Part shown: positions 1 to 47,739 of the stretch, piece after piece
Layout of the letters: each line of letters opens with the position of its first letter
Position numbering within the stretch: the stretch's first letter is position 1
NCBI GenBank assembly: GCA_038496445.1
Contig: JALMLS010000420.1
Location: 310,001-374,000 of the forward strand
DNA from: Trichosphaerium sp. ATCC 40318
Lineage: Eukaryota > Protista > Tubulinea
Direction of reading: 5' to 3'
DNA length: 64,000 nucleotides
The notes under the pieces: generated by a model
What the model was told of the DNA's origin: nothing
Database searches by the model: none
What the model saw: only the letters and a program-made list of their open reading frames with translations
Program-made: the position numbers and the translations under genes

Positions 1-3000
1 CGCTTTTCTCGTCTTTTCTTAACACGATCACGCTCTTCATCCTCAGTAACACCAGGACTAATAAGAAAGTAAGTATACGCAAGCAATAAACACAAAAAAA
101 CTGAAAGAAAAAAAATCAAAAAGCAAAAAGAAAGAACTTACCGCCATCGTCTTGCACGATGCTTATTCTGCTTATGAATGATACGTTTAATCTCATCAGG
201 ATCCTTGATAATCTCATGAACCTCTCTTTCAGTACCATCCCGACCAATCTCCTTTCTGACTCTCTTAAGTACACGTCTACCACTCTGAATACCCTTCAAA
301 AAGTCGTCCAAGTTCTTATCAGTTAATTCATTAAGAGCAGAAATATCTTGGTTTTTGAACTTTGGCCTTGACCCTGGCCTTCCAGAAGGTCCATCTTCCA
401 TCATTGTAAGCTGTAGTAAGTCATCCATATGCTTCTTCTCGGAATCAGCATCAATCTCATCACCATCGTCACCTCCAAGAACATTCTTTAAACGTCTTGG
501 TGCTCGTTTCTTTTTTGATTTTTTGGCTAAAGCTGAGGTAACCTCATCGAGGAACTGACTGTAATCCTCATCTTCTTCATCTTCTTCTTCAGAAGAGAAC
601 ATAGGATCAGTCTCACTCAAAGCACGTATTTGATTATCAAAGATTGCTTGACAAGTATCATTGTATTGTTGCTGATGCATTGCAACACTTTTACGTTTAT
701 GACGTGCGAATTTGAGCACATCTTCACGCTCTTCACCGGCTTCTTTGGCGCGGTTAGATAGGATCCTAACCATGGCAATACGATCCCAACGACCAAGTTT
801 TGCGATAGCTGCATCTCTCATACCAAGTTCCAGCAGTACGTTACGAGCATGTTCAAGAGATAATTTACGTAAATCAGCTGATGTTCCAGTAACATTTGTC
901 TTGGTCTTTGGTTCTTTTGTTGCACCTGTAGATGCCGTAGAGGCTTTTTGGGCCATACGGACATAACTAAAGGCTTCGCCACGCTGACCTGAAGGGTCAC
1001 CAAAACCGGTTAATTGAAGTAGACCTTTTCCACTCACAGCAGTCAAGAAATTGCTAGAAATCAACTTTGTTAGCTTCAAGTTTTTTTTCAGAAACATTAA
1101 CAAAGTACCTTGTGAGATTCCAAGGTGTGAGTTGCAGTGTCTTTAATATATACTCAGCTGATTCTTTAGAAGTGCCAGGTTTTATATCACGTTCAAAATT
1201 TTGTACACAAGTGATAAGAGCAGGTGTAACATTGTTCAAACGTTCCTATAATTAAAAAACAATTAAAACGAAGAATTGTAATAACAGACCGGTTGTAAAT
1301 CTCTATACATACCACACCAGCTTCATGAACACGCTGTATTCCCGCAGCCATAGCTTCGTATTGACATACCATCTCAGGTGATACCATACCTTGAATATCT
1401 TCCTCGGAAGGTATCTGAAAACCGGCTTTTAAAACCCAACTTCCGCTCTCATCACCACCACGTTGAAAGGTTGAACAGTACTAAAACAAATCATAAGCAA
1501 TCAGAGGAGAAGTACACGTTTTGAACTCACCTTCAGCCGTTTACGAATTGAGTTATCAGAGTTACCAGGAAAACTTTTTGAAATATCGCTAATTTTCACA
1601 GCAGGTAATGCTTTGAACTTTTGTCTGCTTTTCTTTGCTCTGAATTCGCGATAAACTCGAGCTTGAAGTCTCATTTTGATATAATCATTAGAACTACGAG
1701 AATTTGGTGCCCAGACCTACACGAGAAAAAGAGTGTAAGCAAGGAACAAAGAAAGAAAAGACACCATGAAACAGAAAAGAAAATACGTACCTCAGTGCAT
1801 GGTTGGCATTGACCAACACAGTAGACGGCTGGTATCTCTCTTATGATTATACGATCACCACTACGAACCAACAAGAAGTCTGTTTCTCTTGGTGTATGAG
1901 CAAACATTGGCGCTTTGTAAAGATTATTCTCAAGACTTTGAAGCGCAGTTCCAGGTCTTATATCACCAACAAAAGGAGACCTAACCTCAGGCTCTAAAAA
2001 TACATCCTTGCCGTCCTTGAACTAACAAACAACAGTCAAAAAAACCTGCTAACAAATAGCCAAAGAAAAGTACAAGACACGCACATCTAACTCCTTCACT
2101 TCACCTTTATGTTGTTTTCTGTAGTAGTTCTGGATACGACTACCCATACCAACAATCCCAAGAATTGGTGGATGTTCTTCAACATACTCACATAAAATAA
2201 CACGTCCTTCACGTGCTGATAGATCCTTACGTTTCTTCATAACTAAAACATAAATCAAAACAATACAAATCAGAGCAAAAAAAAAGCAAGTGTCTACAAC
2301 TCAAATGCGTGTGGACGTACCAGCTACGCTTGAGACAATACGTCTACGTTTCGTCTTGGCTCCAAGACGAACTTTATGAGTACCACGCCTCAAGTGGAGC
2401 CTTGGACGGTTATAGTAGTGTAGTTCTTCCTGAGTTTGGAACGTTTTTGCTGTGAGAAGTCGCAATGCAGGTTGTGAGTGAGCTACACCTGCTTGTTGCA
2501 AAGGTTTTACATCCTTTGTTGTTCTCAAGGCGTAATATGCGTCATTTGATAGGTTGAAAGGATCAACATCTTTCAAGTCTTCTTGGACTTGTTGCAAAGC
2601 ATCGTGGTTGTTTAGAGTACCTAGCAAGTTGATGAGTAATGAGGAAATACTGTGGTTTAGAATAGAGTCATTTTAGACGAACCTGGCATTTGAAGTAGAC
2701 GTCTTTTTGGTCTCTTCTTCTTTTTTTCTGGTTGACCTTTGTTTTGGACTTTGACAGGCTTGGTTTCTACTTTCTTCGCGTGAGGAAGGTGAAAGACCAT
2801 ATTTTCGTCGTTTAGATCTAATAAACAGTAAGTAAATATCAATAGGATAGTGAGTGTGATGAGAGTAATAAATAAAACCATAATTTCTTTAATCCCAAAC
2901 AAACTATCGCTTTGTGTTTGCTTCTTCGAGCGTACCAAGAATCAAATTAGTATTTACAGGTTTCTCAGGTTCTTTATCATTATCCCAAATAACAGACTTT

Positions 3001-4680: not shown

Positions 4681-6329
4681 CTATCAACACTTTTCGTCAG
4701 TTTTTTTTAACTACATACTCCTGCGCAATAGAGGGAAGCAAAATATGAACACAAACAGTAAAACGATCGCGAAGGGAAAAAATAGCTCTGGAAACGAGCG
4801 AAACTCAAAAAAACGCATAGCATACGTGGTATTAAATTTTTAAGGGTTCTTTGGAGTGGATTATTCTTGGCTTTGTTCTGAAGAGCTTGAAATGGCTTAA
4901 TAATCTGGACTTAATCAACACCAATTTGACGACAACTTTACTGATGTCGCAACGCAACAATTTTTTTGTGGTTTTTGTATTTTCGTCGTCTGAGTTCGCT
5001 GTAGCTTTATTAAACCTTTTCCACAAATACGCACTTTAACTGCCTAATCGTCTTTGAGACTTACAGAGCGTATTTGTAGCGACTAATTGTGTACCTACTT
5101 CTCCATTGGTGTTTCGGCGCACAAAAACGAGGCACCCGCTCTAGTTCTACCCATTTGGTACCCGTTGGTCGCGTATGCGCATAGTCTTTGTTTTAAATTG
5201 AAATCAAGGCTTCACATAGTAGAAAGGACAGCCACATAACCAAAATACCGACAACGTTTAAAAAATAATTGTACAATAACTTTACTTACACAAATTTGCT
5301 ACTCTTTTTTTTTCCCAAAACCTAGCCATACATACAAGTTCATTGCAAATTCCACTCGACGAGACACTCTCTTATAGTAGTGCCTTAGTCTCACGGATGC
5401 CAACTTCGAAGAAGCACTCTGTGATCACCAAAAAAAGTTTAGAAAGTGCAAAAGAAAAAACCGAACAACAAGTTGTTGGCTTTTCTCATTTTTCTATTTT
5501 TCCTTTTTTTTGTTGTGGCAATAATCAACGCCAATAGGACGTTTCTACCATCGGAGAATCCCCACCACCGAACCCAAAGCCATTCTCAAAGGGAGTGACC
5601 TGAAGGTTGACATTGAGGAGATTGCAACGATAGTGTATATTATGTATTGCGATTTACGCAATTGGTAAGTACATTGTCCCCATTCGGCTTCTTTGATTGC
5701 GCCTTTCGCTTTCGCTAAAGGGCAATACATTCCAAAGAAGCCAAGCGGACGCCCACAAACGAAAAAAAAAACCCGCAAAGTCCAATTTACCTTCATCAAA
5801 TAAAAGCTTTTACAAAGGCGAAGGTTTACAAAAAACAAAGAGGACATAAAAAAAAAAGGTTAAAAAAAGGCGTCCTAGGGGATTATTAATAAAGATGGCA
5901 ATACTTACCTGGTTCGTGCAGTTACGGGCTTCGTACTGCAGGTTTGGGATTCTTCTTTCTTTGGTCCATCCAAAGCGGTAAAATCATTCCTAATGGCGCC
6001 GGCGGCGCTCACGTGCTTGTTTCTTAATGCTGGATCGTGCATCGATTGTATTTAAACAAACGACGCGATCGGCTTTAAGGTGATGCCACATCGTGATCAG
6101 CAGGTGTTGTTTGCTTGTAGTTAAAGAAATAGATCAGGGCGTTTATGATTGGGTAAAAATGGTGTTCTGAGGACTTGGAGAATTGGCGAAGCGTTTTCTG
6201 ATCGCAAACACGTACAGCTGACTAACACAGCATTGTGTAGGGGCACGTTAACTTGCTGGTTGAAATCAGGGCTGTACAGCGAGTGCCTAACAAAAAAAAC
6301 AAAGCCGAGAAAAAGAATAAAAAAAAACT

Positions 6330-7771
6330 TATCGAACCTGCCAGAGAAGAGGAAAAAAAATTTGTGTAGGAGGATACTCTAATAGGTGCGAATAACCGCG
6401 GGCGTTTGTGAATATGTGTGGTGTCTGGTGAGTTTTCGATAGCTCGTTTTCTTCTTGCAAGTAGAACAGAGCGCATAGCTGGTTTACCTTCATTAGCGAA
6501 AGCCCATTTTAAGACACCTCGGCGTAGAAGAGAAAGGACCTCTGTAGATAATTCCTGCTGGGCGCGTTTGAATACTTTGGCGAGTATAGGTTTGCGTAAA
6601 GTAAGAAAAGCAGAATCATCAATGATGTTTCCGAGGTGAAGTATAAAATAAGTCTCACAGATGTTAGAGAACTCTGAGTTGGGAAAAGCTGAGGTAACTG
6701 CATTCCAAACTTTCGGGAGGTTACTTGGAGTCAAAGTATTCACAATGTGGTCCTTTACGAGCTGAGCAAGCCTCGGTAGACAAAAGTATACCGCAACCTT
6801 TGTACCACAAATTAATAAGAAAATTATGCTTATATGTTGTTAGCTCACCCGACAAAGCTCCCATAACGGCCAATCTTGTACGCGTTTAAACGCATCCAAA
6901 TCAGGAAAACTCTGTATCTGATCTGTGTAAAGAAACTCAACGACAAAGCGAAAGATGGAAGGGTCAACGTCAGGTAAAGTTATACGTGATTCATCGGACT
7001 CTTGCATGCCGTTTAAAAGTAGCGACTGAAAGTAATCTGAGCGCGCAACTAAGATAGTTTTATGCAAGTGGAATTCTTTGTGTGGCAAGCCAACAACAAA
7101 CGTGACGTCGGACAATCGGCTATCATCGAGCAAACCTTGCATGTCATGGGAAAGAGGAGTTTGTAGTTGTTGTGGAGTTTCAGGGTCTTGTTGCTCGATT
7201 TTTGGAACGACAGCTTCGACTGGTGGTGTGATAGGTCGCGGAGAACCAATTTTTAAAGGGTAATGTACAATGGACTCAAAACTGTTGAGCGTAACGATTC
7301 TAGTACAGATAAGTGGTTTGGCACGTATGGAATTTGGTATACAAGTTTTGCGAAAAAGATCTGTCTCAACCGCGCAATTTGATCAAATAGCCAAACTGCA
7401 ATTCGCAAACGAAAAGGATAAACAGTTACGACGCACCTCTGGTTATTAAAGCGCGATAAAGTGTGTATTGCGTAATCAGTTAGTTTTACAATGTCCATAG
7501 CTTGCATCTGTGCAATTTTAGAGTTCAGAGACGGCCAAGCAAGGGCTTTAAGTGAATGTTTAGAATCAGACAGTGTAACAGCATAGCGCTCCTTTGGAGC
7601 GCCGTTATTACGCCAATTGGTGTCCAGTTTCTTGATTTGAACAACTTGTAAAATAGGTTTAGTCTGTTTCTCTTTGTGTAAACTAGCTGGGTCGTTTGCA
7701 GCTGAAACTTCGGATGTGGTTGAAGAGATGGTCTCTATCCACCCTTCAGAAAGGGACAAGGTGAAAGCCAT
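6330..7771 (-). CDS. RPA70 N-terminal OB-fold + BTB/POZ domain protein (3-4 exons)
   Basis: Exon 7437-7771 (LSEGWI...KPILQVVQIK...ERYAVTLSDS) resembles RPA1-N. A phase-2 intron at 7300-7436 joins it in frame to IVTLNSFE...KIGSP, then a BTB domain (SDVTFVVG...FHLHKTILVARSDYFQSLL...MQES). Intron 6798-6848 follows. 3' end ambiguous (6330 or 6222). Confidence 0.85.
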
Positions 7772-7997
7772 TAGTTGTTGTAGAAAGCGCGAAGAGAAGT
7801 TTGAAATGTGACTTAAAACAGCTACAAGTTTAAGTACACACTTTAGGCGTACGTGGGTTAGACATACGTTTTCGTACACCGGACTGCCTAATGGGTTCGT
7901 TGAAAGAGGGAGCAGCAATGGATTTTGCCAAAATTTCGTCAAAAAAAATGTAAAAATTCTGAATAATTCTTGTCGTACATAACATAACGCAGACGCA

Positions 7998-10387
7998 ATG
8001 GCTCTTAAACTAATTAACCGTCCCCAAGAGCTTTTAAAAGAAGGTTCCCAACACCTTTCTGGCCTTGAAGAGGCAATTTTGAAAAACATCAAAGCCGTGC
8101 GTGAATTAACCGCCATGACGCGTACATGTTTCGGACCAAACGGTAAGGCGCCGGTTTCTCACTTTTGGGTGGCTGATCAGTTGTTGTGAAGGGATGAACA
8201 AGATGATCATCAATAAGATCCAAAAACTGCTTGTTACGAGCGATGCCGCTACTGTGGTAAAAGAGGTCGATATTATTCACCCTGCTGCCAAGTTATGCGT
8301 TATGGCAGCTGAGATGCAGGAAAAAGAGGTAACGCGCTTTAATTAGTAATATGTAGTACGCTGACAGCGTATTATGATAGATTGGCGATGCGACTAATCT
8401 CGTGTTGGTTTTTGCTGGCCAATTGTTACAAACCGCTCAAGAATTGATCTTGTCCGCCGGATTACACCCTACAGATATTATTTCGGGATACGAAAAGGCT
8501 TTTGCGCTAACAGAAAAGATCGTTGAGTGTACGCTTTATAACTTTTCTTCCTTTTTGACATCTGACGTCCTCCAAAGCACTTGTCGCTACCCAAGTCAAA
8601 GACATCCGCAATAACAAAGAAGTTGGTACAGTACTCCGTGCTTCAATTGCCTCAAAGCAATACGGCTTCCAAGACACCCTTGTTCCTCTTATCGCACAAG
8701 CTTGCACTCAAATATGCCCTAAAAACTCAAAAATGTTCAATGTTGACAATGTCAGAGTTGTTAAAATGTTGGGTGGTGCTGTATCTGACAGTCAAGTATT
8801 CAAAGGAATGGTTTTCGATAGACCAGTCGAAGGTACGCAAAAATTTTATTTTTTCAAAGCTTGTTCGTTAATGATTCTCGCAGGAACTGTTCGCGTAGCA
8901 AACAAGGCTAAAATCTGCATTTTTGCCATGGGTATTGATGCTTCTAAGACAGAATCTACTGGTGTATACCGTATTACAACCAAAGCAGGTTTACTCAACG
9001 CTAACAAAGGCGAAGAGCAATCCATTGAGACTGTACGTGCTTTTGAAAACCAGATCACAATATTTTTTCTTTTTGTCTCTACGCGTTTACCGTTCAAACA
9101 AAATGGTAAAAAAATACTACGTAACTGTTTGCTCTAAAGGGTAGAGGTGTAATCTTGTGTTTTTCTTGTTTGGCTATTTATTTACGTTTTTTCTTTTTGT
9201 AGTTGGTTAAAGAGATCGCCTCCGCTGGTGTTAACGTAGTTGTTGCTGGTGGTACTATTTCAGAGATGGCGATGCATTTCTTTGAGAAACACAAGCTCTT
9301 GGTTTTCAAAATCAATTCGAAGTTCCAATTGCGCCGTTTGTGCCGTGCAGTAAAAGCTGTACCTCTTGTCCGATTGGTACGTTAAAAAAAAACTAGAAAA
9401 AGTGCATATCTCTAACAGCCTTCATTTTAGGGTAAACCAACCCCAGAAGAAATTGGCGAATGCGATAAAGTGTACCAGACCGAAATTGCATCACGAAAGT
9501 GTGTTGTATTTGCACAAGACAACGTTAGTACAATTTTTTGATAAAAATTCAACAATTGGTTAATATTAACGATCTCGCGTGTAGGAATCTTCTCGTGTAT
9601 CTACTCTCCTCATTCGTGCTGCCACACGTAATGTACTTGATGACATTGAGCGTGCTATCGGTACGACTAACTACAAAAATTAAAAAATACTAATACATCA
9701 TAGATGATGGCGTAAACGTTTACAAAGCACTTTGCGGTGACCAACGCTTTGTTGCTGGTGCTGGCGCAACTGAAGTTGAGCTTGCTATGCTAATTAAACA
9801 AGAGGCCGACAAGACTCCATCAACTGAACAAGGAGCTATTAAGGGCTTCGGAACATCTCTAGAGATTGTTCCTGTAACATTGGCCGAAAATGCCGGTTAC
9901 AAGGCCATTCACTTGCTCTCTGAGTTGTATGCTGCTCATGCTAAGGAAGACGGTAAGCACGTCGGATTAGATGTCGAGAACGGTTCTGTAGCAGACGCCA
10001 AAAAACTCGAAGTTTTTGATCATTTGGCATCCAAACTTCAGGTTCGTTATTTTTCTTCTTTTCTCCGTCCTCTCCAAAACTTTTTCTTTTTTTGACAATA
10101 TTCCATGATGATATCTATCATTCTAAGCTTATTACTGAATTACTGATGCTTGAGTTCCGCACTGACGAAATTATTTTAATTTACTTTACCTTGTTGAGCT
10201 TTAATTTGTTCATTTTGTTAAATTATACGCTTAGGCACTTCGTCTTGCTACCAACACCGCTGTGACTGTCTTGCGGATAGATCAAATTATTATGGCTCGT
10301 CCAGCAACCGGACCACCAGTACCAGGTCAAAACGGACCTCCACCAGGCATGGCTGGTATGATGGGCCCTGGAATGGACCCTTATTAA
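7998..10387 (+). CDS. CCT8: Chaperonin CCT subunit theta, multi-exon
   Basis: GLEEAILKNIKAVREL...RTCFGPNGMNKMIIN, ASKQYG, FNVDNVRVVK, SKFQLRRLCRAV, VLRIDQIIMARPA; canonical introns. Confidence 0.97.
10101..10170 (+). ncRNA. Intronic box C/D snoRNA in the last CCT8 intron
   Basis: Box C ATGATGA 10105-10111, D' CTGA 10135-10138, C'-like TGATGC 10144-10149, D CTGA 10162-10165, short TTC/GAA terminal stem. It lies in a 193-nt intron (10042-10234), much longer than its neighbours, about 70 nt from the 3' splice site. Confidence 0.75.
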
Positions 10388-22574: not shown

Positions 22575-24497
22575 TTATTCAACACTTAAAACACCATAGT
22601 CATACACCACATCTTGTATTACCTGCCCTTCTTTTGTCCATGCAATAGCTCTTCCATGTAATACATTACAATTCTTTTCAAATTTACGGTTCATCTGTCC
22701 ATTTGTATGCCAAGTAGTGACACTGACTGTTTGTCCATCATCACTATGTATTACTGATTTCTTTAGTTGTCCGCTCTCATACCACTTCCTGCAATCTCCT
22801 CGCGGTTTTCCTTCAACATAAGTTGAATGACTCTTTAGTTTACCATTCTCATGCCACTCTTTAAATTCCCCGTCCAGTTCACCATGTATAAAATTACACT
22901 CATTTTCTAATTGTCCATTTTTATACCAACACTTGTGCACTCCTTCACATGTATCATTGACAAAATTAAACTTTTCTTTCAATTGACTATTTTCATACCA
23001 AGAATTAAACTCTCCTTGTCGTATACCATCAATAAAATTCAGATTCCTAGCCATTGTACCATTTTTATGCCAAAAAGAACATTCTCCATGTTTTTTGTTG
23101 CTAACAAAAAAACATTTCTGCTCAAGTTGTCCGTTTTCATACCATGATAAATACTCTCCTTCTTGTTTCCCATTGATGTAATTACATTGTTTAGATATTT
23201 GTCCATTTTCGTACCACCTCTTTACTAATCCTTCAGTCTCATGGTTTTCATTATAAAACTCAACACACTCTTGTCTTCCATTCGCATGGAAACTTTTGAA
23301 GAATCCATTAGGTCTATTACAATGAACTCTAAGGTGACCATTCTCATCCCAACATTTCTTTTCACCACACTCCTTACTATCTTTCATCATCATTTCAAGC
23401 TTCTTATTTCCATTCTCAAACCACTCTGTATGTAAACCGTTCATCAAATCGTTTTGTAGTGTACCGTGCCACCTGAGATTACCATTATCATGCCACTTCC
23501 ACATTTCTCCTTCTGTCTTTCCATTCACAACATTAGACTTGATATGCATTTGACCGTTTCTAAACCATTGTAGTAGCTGCCCATTATCCACATCATCTGT
23601 TATGTTTATACTAAGTTTAATTTGTCCATTGTCATACCACTCTTCATGTAATCCGTTCTCTTTGTTGTCTTTATAATAACAACGTAATAGTAGTTTACCA
23701 TTAGGATGATACTTCAAACACTCACCTTGTGCTTCACCGTTCTTATAAAACGCTTCCAAGGAAACCTGACCACAATCATACCGTTTTATGATCTTTCCAT
23801 GCTTCTTGCCGTTAACAAAGTGAGAGTGTTCAACAACTTGTCCGTTCTTAGTAAAATACTTGAACTCACCATGTCTGACGTTATTGACAATAAAACACTG
23901 TTCCGCCAGTTCGCCAGTTTGGTAGTATGTCTTAACTTCTCCTGTAATTAATCCATCAACACAGTTTTGTTCTTTGACCAAGACTCCAGTATTATTGTTA
24001 TAAACAAGAAGCGGTCCTTGTCTTATATTCTTTACAAACGTTGTATGAACACGAATAACATCTTGCTTCCATTCTTTCTTAACACCGTCCAATAAACCAT
24101 CAACAAACTGTTCCTCACTTATTGGTTTACCATATTTTGTCCACGTGCTAGTTGTTCCGTGTAATATACCATATTTATAAGCGCGCGAGCATGTTTTTAC
24201 TCCATTTGTATCCCAAGTAATCAATTCTCCATGTAGTTTACCTTCGGCCATAGGTCGCTTTTCATGTAGAACACCATTTGGGTGCCACTCTTCGAATAAT
24301 ATTACTTGACCATTATCGAACGTTAATTGCTGCTTTTTGCCATCCTTACAGGTTTTAGACCATTTTCCGATCCTGTTTAAAGCGCTGTTGTAGTGTGTTG
24401 ATGTGGCAGAGGTTTTACAGAGCAAATGCCATTTAAAAAATGCGTGTGGCGCTAAGGAACAGATATATTGTTGAATTTCGCGTGGTAGAGAAAGCAT
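22575..24497 (-). CDS. Intronless F-box + more than 20 MORN-variant (YwqK-like) repeats
   Basis: MLSLPREIQQYIC F-box start, then tandem ~24-aa G..hG.y..WyeNGql repeats over 640 aa. Confidence 0.9.
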   Translation of the reverse strand: MLSLPREIQQYICSLAPHAFFKWHLLCKTSATSTHYNSALNRIGKWSKTCKDGKKQQLTFDNGQVILFEEWHPNGVLHEKRPMAEGKLHGELITWDTNGVKTCSRAYKYGILHGTTSTWTKYGKPISEEQFVDGLLDGVKKEWKQDVIRVHTTFVKNIRQGPLLVYNNNTGVLVKEQNCVDGLITGEVKTYYQTGELAEQCFIVNNVRHGEFKYFTKNGQVVEHSHFVNGKKHGKIIKRYDCGQVSLEAFYKNGEAQGECLKYHPNGKLLLRCYYKDNKENGLHEEWYDNGQIKLSINITDDVDNGQLLQWFRNGQMHIKSNVVNGKTEGEMWKWHDNGNLRWHGTLQNDLMNGLHTEWFENGNKKLEMMMKDSKECGEKKCWDENGHLRVHCNRPNGFFKSFHANGRQECVEFYNENHETEGLVKRWYENGQISKQCNYINGKQEGEYLSWYENGQLEQKCFFVSNKKHGECSFWHKNGTMARNLNFIDGIRQGEFNSWYENSQLKEKFNFVNDTCEGVHKCWYKNGQLENECNFIHGELDGEFKEWHENGKLKSHSTYVEGKPRGDCRKWYESGQLKKSVIHSDDGQTVSVTTWHTNGQMNRKFEKNCNVLHGRAIAWTKEGQVIQDVVYDYGVLSVE

Positions 24498-46662: not shown

Positions 46663-47739
46663 ATGGATGAAAAAAAGGTTTACCAGAGCAGTAGTGATCT
46701 TGTCGAGCTCCCTGTAGAATTGATAGTTCATATTCTAAAACAAGGCGTTTTTACACTTTATTCCGCACAAACTTGCCGTTTCTTGCGGGATATTGTCCAT
46801 AACCACGTCGGATATGATCGGATTAATGTCAAAAGCACTACCGATGTGATGATGCTTTCGGGGAGTCCTTTGTTGAAGAATACGCCCATTTGTCTTTATG
46901 GAAATATAAACGACAATCAGTTGAGTTTACTAGCAGGAGTGCATACAATCAGTTTGTATCGTTGTATGTCAATAACAGATAAAGGCATCAAGGTGCTAGC
47001 AGGTGTACATGACATTGATTTATCATATACACATATTACAGATGAAGGTTTGAAGGCATTGAAAGGTGTACACTCTATCAGCTTACATAGATGTAACTCA
47101 ATAACAGATGAGGGCATCAAGACGTTGGCTGGTGTACACACTATTGAGCTCGAATGTGTACACATTACAGATGAAGGAGTGAAAGCATTGGCAGGTGTAC
47201 AACAGATTGATCTAAAATGGACACAAGTGACAGATGAAGGTTTGAAGGCGCTGGTAGGTGTACACACTATCTACCTGTATGGATGTGACTTAATAACAGA
47301 TGAGGGCATCAAAGTATTGGCTGGTGTATGCAAGATTGATTTATCATATACAAAAGTGACAGATAAAGGTTTGAAGGCATTGAAAGGTGTACACTCTATC
47401 AGCTTACATAGATGTTACTCAATAACAGATGAGGGCATCAAGGCGCTAGCAGGTGTACATGAGATTGATTTATCATGTACAAAGGTAACAGATAAAGGTT
47501 TGAAAGCATTGGCAGGCGTACACAAAATACAGTTAACTTGGTGCGATATAACAGATGAGGGCATTAAAGCATTGGCAGGTGTACATCAAATTAATCTACA
47601 ATCGACAAAAGTGACAGATGAAGGTTTGAAGGCGCTAGTAGGTGTACACAATATCACCGTGTATGATTGCTTTTTAATTTCAAGAGAGGGTATCCAGGCA
47701 TTAGGTGCGGAGATAGTAAATTCAGACTTCTGTGAATAG
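46663..47739 (+). CDS. Intronless F-box + ~12-13 LRR protein
   Basis: LVELPVELIVHIL F-box; tandem 21-22-aa xGVHxIxLxx(C)xxITDEGxKAL repeats. Confidence 0.92.
   Translation: MDEKKVYQSSSDLVELPVELIVHILKQGVFTLYSAQTCRFLRDIVHNHVGYDRINVKSTTDVMMLSGSPLLKNTPICLYGNINDNQLSLLAGVHTISLYRCMSITDKGIKVLAGVHDIDLSYTHITDEGLKALKGVHSISLHRCNSITDEGIKTLAGVHTIELECVHITDEGVKALAGVQQIDLKWTQVTDEGLKALVGVHTIYLYGCDLITDEGIKVLAGVCKIDLSYTKVTDKGLKALKGVHSISLHRCYSITDEGIKALAGVHEIDLSCTKVTDKGLKALAGVHKIQLTWCDITDEGIKALAGVHQINLQSTKVTDEGLKALVGVHNITVYDCFLISREGIQALGAEIVNSDFCE

Follow-up and report, generated by a model that had tools for sequence, protein, structure and literature searches.

The locus studied here raises the question of whether an OB fold of the kind found at the N-terminus of RPA70 (RPA70N) has been joined to a BTB domain in a single expressed gene, and of what such a protein might do. 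RPA70N is a hub that brings ATRIP, RAD9, MRE11, BLM, WRN, ETAA1 and other proteins to single-stranded DNA (ssDNA). An earlier note, made from the letters of a 64,000-nucleotide stretch of DNA (hereafter the window), had described an RPA1-N-like domain fused to a BTB domain and a helical tail, and had read the product as a CRL3 adaptor that copies the docking surface of RPA and captures RPA70N clients of host or viral origin.

Both domains lie on one spliced transcript

The gene runs on the minus strand from 7771 to 6075 and has four exons, whose spliced translation is a protein of 414 residues and about 47 kDa (Table 1). No upstream ATG is present within the 32 bases preceding the start codon. 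Four public sequencing runs (X1-X4) contain this stretch, and their contigs were aligned over 6100-7900. None of the runs is recorded as RNA; X1 and X2 carry the label 'RNA?' by guess, and X3 and X4 the label '?'.

A contig of 1238 bases from X1 matches the gene with zero mismatches in three blocks (7803-7437, 7299-6849 and 6797-6378), with introns 1 and 2 absent. The lack of GT..AG introns in a contig has to stem from spliced RNA, or from a processed copy of it. Since the contig skips intron 1 exactly, both domains are carried on one mRNA, and the 7299/7437 junction that the earlier note had predicted from its 7300-7436 intron is thereby observed. Read depth shows the same pattern. The gene has a depth of 57 in the X1 contigs, the bin 7320-7380 inside intron 1 has zero depth in all four runs, and the bin 7381-7441, which holds the intron edge and five bases of exon 1, is low (4.67 in X1, 0.5 in X2). 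Depth is also zero in the intergenic stretch past 7808. The Rep-A_N and BTB exons thus share one expressed, spliced transcript.

Intron 2 contains an in-frame stop, and its 51-base skip is also present in X3 and X4, which are filed under another organism label. A third intron is defined by loose ends of X1 and X3 contigs at 6378, which read bases 6084-6113, and X1 also has a junction contig; the direct junction of exon 4 to exon 3 is observed for 6084-6113 only. Because this intron exists, the coding sequence stops at the TAA of 6075-6077 and not at 6330. The stop at 6330, where the earlier note had ended the gene after overlooking introns 2 and 3, lies in another frame inside intron 3 and was rejected. 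A separate X1 contig crosses 6100-6407 unspliced, so intron 3 is sometimes retained or the run contains pre-mRNA or DNA. With the intron retained, a hydrophobic tail of 51 residues would stand in place of the last 12 residues, and the rest of the protein would be unchanged.

Three coding positions are not the same in the window and the other runs: codons 247 and 342 carry synonymous changes, and the substitution T388A falls in the tail past the predicted helices. Although too few for a test, these differences are in keeping with constraint on the gene. The gene is present at 99-100% identity in runs filed under two organism labels (X1 versus X2-X4); this reflects either one species under two names or a mixed sample.

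Table 1 Features of the RPA70N-BTB gene (positions in the window) and cleft positions of its product aligned with human RPA70N.
Feature	Position	Strand	Description
5' untranslated stretch	7772..7803	-	X1 cDNA-type contig begins at 7803
Exon 1	7437..7771	-	Begins with the ATG (7769-7771); codons 1-111 and two bases of codon 112; bulk of the RPA70N-like OB fold (Rep-A_N)
Intron 1	7300..7436	-	137 bases, GT..AG; skipped exactly in the X1 contig
Exon 2	6849..7299	-	Residues 112-262
Exon 2, first part	to ~7239	-	Last OB strand and KIGSP motif
Exon 2, remainder		-	Acidic Pro-rich linker, then BTB up to helix four or five
Phi-X-E Cul3-contact motif	6999..7007	-	M210-Q211-E212; aligns with SPOP M233-E234-E235
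Intron 2	6798..6848	-	51 bases, GT..AG, within the BTB; skipped in X1, X3 and X4
Exon 3	6378..6797	-	Residues 263-402; spanned by the X1 spliced contig
Exon 3, content		-	End of BTB; predicted all-helical, possibly BACK-like tail (~6489-6728); bipartite NLS-like stretch (6396-6455)
Intron 3	6114..6377	-	264 bases, GT..AG; spliced in one contig path, retained in another
Exon 4, coding part	6075..6113	-	Last 12 residues and TAA stop (6075-6077)
Human R31			K47 in the protist protein
Human R41			R62 in the protist protein; Arg kept
Human R43			A64 in the protist protein; lost
Human K88			S106 in the protist protein
Human R91			N110 or Q111 in the protist protein; lost

The N-terminal domain is a divergent RPA70N-type OB fold

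Pfam scans, AlphaFold2 (AF2) modelling and database searches were run exon by exon, the introns cutting both domains. Exon 1 (7439-7771) matches Rep-A_N (PF04057) at E = 1.4e-12 and 48 bits against a gathering score of 26.7; this was its sole Pfam match, and MATH was not found in it. Exon 2 (6849-7298) matches BTB (PF00651) over 6909-7133 at E = 5.9e-20 and 71.9 bits against a gathering score of 20.5. Scores so far above the curated cut-offs mean that the resemblance of either domain is not due to chance, and with both families above threshold on a single transcript the fusion first read from the letters is borne out.

Intron 1 interrupts the OB fold ahead of its last strand, and after splicing residues 1-135 can be aligned with full-length Rep-A_N domains as far as the IG.P motif (KIGSP here). 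The motifs LSEG, PILQV, RY.V.LSD and KIGSP, on which the OB-fold assignment had originally rested, are all present on the minus strand. A profile combining exon 1 with the three Rep-A_N proteins of the phmmer search described below matched human RPA70N (E = 4e-16) and, less strongly, yeast Rfa1-N (E = 2e-6). The AF2 model of exon 1, which is without the last strand (encoded by exon 2), is of moderate quality (pLDDT 64). When it was compared with solved structures by Foldseek, RPA70N or Rfa1 N-OB chains made up 22 of the 23 best rows, with probabilities of 0.97-1.00 and TM scores of about 0.43-0.53, and a shape search of the ESM Atlas returned Rep-A_N clusters at TM 0.64-0.66. Identity to human RPA70N chains is about 25%. 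The domain carries about 13 to 19 additional residues ahead of its first strand, depending on the alignment, and is basic (pI 9.6). We conclude that the N-terminal domain is a divergent RPA70N-type OB fold.

The ssDNA-binding OB families of RPA (tRNA_anti-codon, REPA_OB_2 and Rep_fac-A_C) gave no Pfam match at E up to 1 in a scan covering exon 2, exon 3 and the intron-3 read-through, that is, everything downstream of exon 1 apart from the 12-residue exon 4. DBD-A, DBD-B and DBD-C were thus not detected in the parts scanned, in agreement with the earlier description.

The BTB domain is closest to that of SPOP

Among solved structures, the nine best relatives of the BTB domain are all SPOP (E = 3.7e-11 to 1.6e-10), followed by BTB-ZF and Kelch proteins, with BCL6 and ZBTB17 included. 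The motif through which such domains contact Cul3 is kept (Table 1). In this phi-X-(D/E) motif, which lies in the alpha3-beta4 loop of the BTB, the hydrophobic residue is buried in Cul3, and the SPOP substitution M233E abolishes Cul3 binding (PMC6484134). The SPOP-like relatives and the retained motif support a BTB domain of the Cul3-adaptor kind, as judged from sequence. The proposal of a CRL3 adaptor accordingly holds at the level of the BTB's relatives and its phi-X-E motif, while Cul3 binding itself is inferred from them.

Between the OB fold and the BTB lies a short, flexible linker that is Pro-rich and acidic (pI 4.2). The tail encoded by exon 3 gave no Pfam match to BACK or BACK_BPM_SPOP at E up to 1, and no relative was found for it among solved structures. 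AF2 run on the tail without an alignment placed seven helices in a model of unreliable quality (pLDDT 49). An ESM Atlas feature search returned BACK and BACK_BPM_SPOP clusters at 0.86-0.88, a weak signal that we take only as a lead towards a BACK-like tail. The tail is strongly basic (pI 10.3), and by inspection its C-terminal clusters RRKR (377) and KRPR (393) form a bipartite NLS-like pattern.

A Cul3-independent role would suit some of these features. Many BTB families, such as the BTB-ZF proteins, do not bind Cul3, BCL6 and ZBTB17 are among the solved matches, and the tail has no significant BACK match; the BTB might then merely dimerise, and the protein would act as a bivalent competitor, sequestering partners of the RPA N-domain or holding them in the nucleus, with no ubiquitination involved. 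However, the best BTB matches are to SPOP and not to BTB-ZF proteins, the phi-X-E motif is intact, and a helical tail stands at the 3-box position of Cul3 adaptors, with feature hits that lean to BACK_BPM_SPOP. We therefore regard a dimeric decoy of this kind as unlikely.

A putative nuclear Cul3-type substrate adaptor

In the SPOP/MATH-BTB layout, an N-terminal substrate-binding domain is followed by a linker, the BTB, a helical 3-box/BACK region and a C-terminal basic NLS. Since the protist protein has a SPOP-type layout in which the RPA70N-type OB fold replaces MATH, we take it for a nuclear substrate adaptor of the Cul3 type whose OB cleft would grip a short acidic or amphipathic target segment, and we give this reading a probability of about 0.55. 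The BTB would dimerise, and the phi-X-E loop together with the following helices would contact a Cul3-type cullin at its N-terminus. A nuclear protein with a short acidic or amphipathic stretch gripped in the RPA70N-like cleft would then be ubiquitinated. Cul3 binding, nuclear location, the kind of ligand and ubiquitination are all predictions from the sequence features described above.

If the adaptor used its copy of the RPA docking domain as a receptor for the same partners, it could ubiquitinate checkpoint or repair factors competed away from RPA, or phosphorylated RPA32. We put this forward only tentatively, as a possibility with the odds against it. If true, it would link the RPA interaction hub directly to a cullin ligase, a connection not known before; to our knowledge, none of the known ligases that act on RPA (RFWD3, PRP19) uses an RPA-like domain. 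An adaptor of this kind would also offer a handle on the control of replication-stress factors in a little-studied protist.

The docking cleft is partly conserved

In human RPA70N the conserved residues R31, R41, R43 and R91 are each required to bind HelB, BLM, RMI1 and WRN, and binding of MRE11 requires R41, R43 and R91 (PMC10479964). In the alignment with the protist protein (Table 1), one of these four arginines is kept, one is conservatively replaced and two are lost, so that the conserved basic cleft of RPA70N is not reproduced. The alignment at R91 is uncertain because the loop there has two extra residues. Other basic residues in the cleft region are K48, R107 and R112. The position of human R41 corresponds to that of yeast K45.

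The claim that the protein copies the docking surface of RPA is therefore weakened: R62 at R41 and K47 at R31 speak for it, and the loss of R43 and R91 against it. Since only part of the basic cleft is kept, the protein probably serves a lineage-specific subset of clients or a different set, and probably not the full clientele of RPA itself. With two of the four key arginines gone, we rate as rather doubtful the claim that the protein captures RPA70N's own clients, which is weaker than that of a CRL3-type adaptor. The viral clients proposed in the earlier note found no support.

RPA itself, or ssDNA coated with it, might instead be the target. In human cells, phosphorylated RPA32 is a ligand of RPA70N (PMC7939470), and RPA70N also binds ssDNA directly (PMC3561959); the protist N-domain is basic (pI 9.6). 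Its cleft could accept the acidic N-terminus of RPA32 in phosphorylated form or have a weak affinity for ssDNA, and with the avidity of a BTB oligomer it would bring a Cul3 ligase to stressed forks, where RPA would be ubiquitinated. Yet the arginines with which the cleft meets acidic ligands are only half conserved, no DBD-A/B/C-type OB for ssDNA binding was detected alongside the domain, and nothing separates RPA32 or ssDNA from other ligands. We consider RPA an improbable target, less likely still than the decoy role, and retain the adaptor with a nuclear protein as its client.

Relatives and novelty of the architecture

When 1.84 billion cluster representatives were searched by phmmer with exon 1, five sequences matched at E up to 0.001, none of them with a BTB domain, and the product of the gene itself is absent from these representatives. 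The three best hits (P0001-P0003, E = 5e-6 to 8e-5) are Rep-A_N-only proteins; two bacterial repeat proteins among the hits were taken for chance. In a word index, stop-free ORFs were used as queries so that full-length fusions fall within the length window. No relative of the N-domain was found among entries of 158-502 residues (query ORF 7256-8116, region 116-226), and the same approach found none for the tail (query ORF 6225-6839, region 15-154). A metagenome contig scan with exon 1 gave no match. Among the ESM Atlas clusters nearest by features or shape (clusters of at least 50 members), none combines Rep-A_N with BTB, and no paper retrieved from the literature had a title or abstract about an RPA70N/Rep-A_N plus BTB architecture. 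As far as searched, in the representatives, word index, metagenome contigs and literature, the architecture was not found outside this gene, and its description in the earlier note as unrecognised stands within the same bounds; single-sequence searches of this kind are blind to an independent Rep-A_N-BTB fusion from different parents.

No paralogue of the gene was found within the window by tblastn of the model. A PILQVL-coding stretch at 6170-6186 in intron 3 was considered as a remnant of a second Rep-A_N domain and rejected; with neither a tblastn nor a Pfam match there, it is treated as chance.

The lack of an orthologue in the representatives, word index or metagenome contigs would suit a young product of domain shuffling that is expressed but near-neutral, with little or no specific function. 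The gene, however, keeps an intact frame across four exons and is spliced and expressed (depth 57 in the X1 contigs), its key fold residues and Cul3-contact residues are kept, and at about 25% identity to human RPA70N its N-domain is far from any RPA1, which speaks against a recent copy. This is to us the least probable of the readings considered, and a substrate adaptor remains the preferred one.

Other genes in the window

A multi-exon TCP-1/CCT chaperonin gene lies at 7998-9140 on the plus strand (Pfam Cpn60_TCP1, E = 2e-13 and 2.5e-10 in two exons). Its start and the 5' end of the RPA70N-BTB mRNA are 195 bases apart on opposite strands, so the two genes probably share 7804-7997 as a bidirectional promoter region. 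On the other side, a short ATG-started ORF at 5905-6042 (minus strand), about 30 bases downstream of the RPA70N-BTB stop, ends at a GTAAGT-like site and has no Pfam match. This ORF may open the next gene on the minus strand as its first exon, in which case the 3' UTR of RPA70N-BTB would be very short.

Further along the window, an uninterrupted ORF of 640 residues at 22575-24497 (minus strand) consists of MORN_2 repeats (Pfam E = 2.6e-56) and is unusually long for one exon of an intron-rich stretch. A 358-residue ORF at 46663-47739 (plus strand) has RNI-type leucine-rich repeats (LRR_6, E = 3.2e-39). An ORF at 138-1103 (minus strand) matches the end of DUF3591 (E = 2.2e-16), the central conserved domain in TAF1, and probably represents a single exon of a larger TAF1-like gene extending beyond the window.

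Comparison with known systems

The N-terminal domain of RPA70/Rfa1 (DBD-F) belongs to the same Pfam family as the protist domain and has the same fold, with the core motifs PILQV, RY..LSD and IG.P kept; unlike in RPA1, the protist domain is not trailed by DBD-A, DBD-B and DBD-C. Rep-A_N is likewise detached from the remainder of RPA1 in the stand-alone or repeated Rep-A_N proteins P0001-P0003, which have one to three copies of the domain but, unlike the protist protein, no BTB. Rep-A_N clusters are most frequent in Streptophyta. A BTB adaptor that uses the RPA70N fold would be a natural experiment in which the OB domain serves as a portable peptide-recognition module outside RPA.

The SPOP/MATH-BTB adaptors of Cul3 (BPM, HIB) have the same domain order as the protist protein, in which the BACK region and the NLS are putative. 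In contrast to SPOP, the protist protein is without MATH, whose position is occupied by the RPA70N-type OB fold, and its tail has diverged too far to match the Pfam BACK and BACK_BPM_SPOP profiles. RhoBTB likewise places a signalling or docking domain ahead of the BTB, presumably as bait for a Cul3 ligase, although the bait domain differs. The protist gene would thus bear on how Cul3 adaptors acquire new specificities by exchanging the substrate-binding domain.
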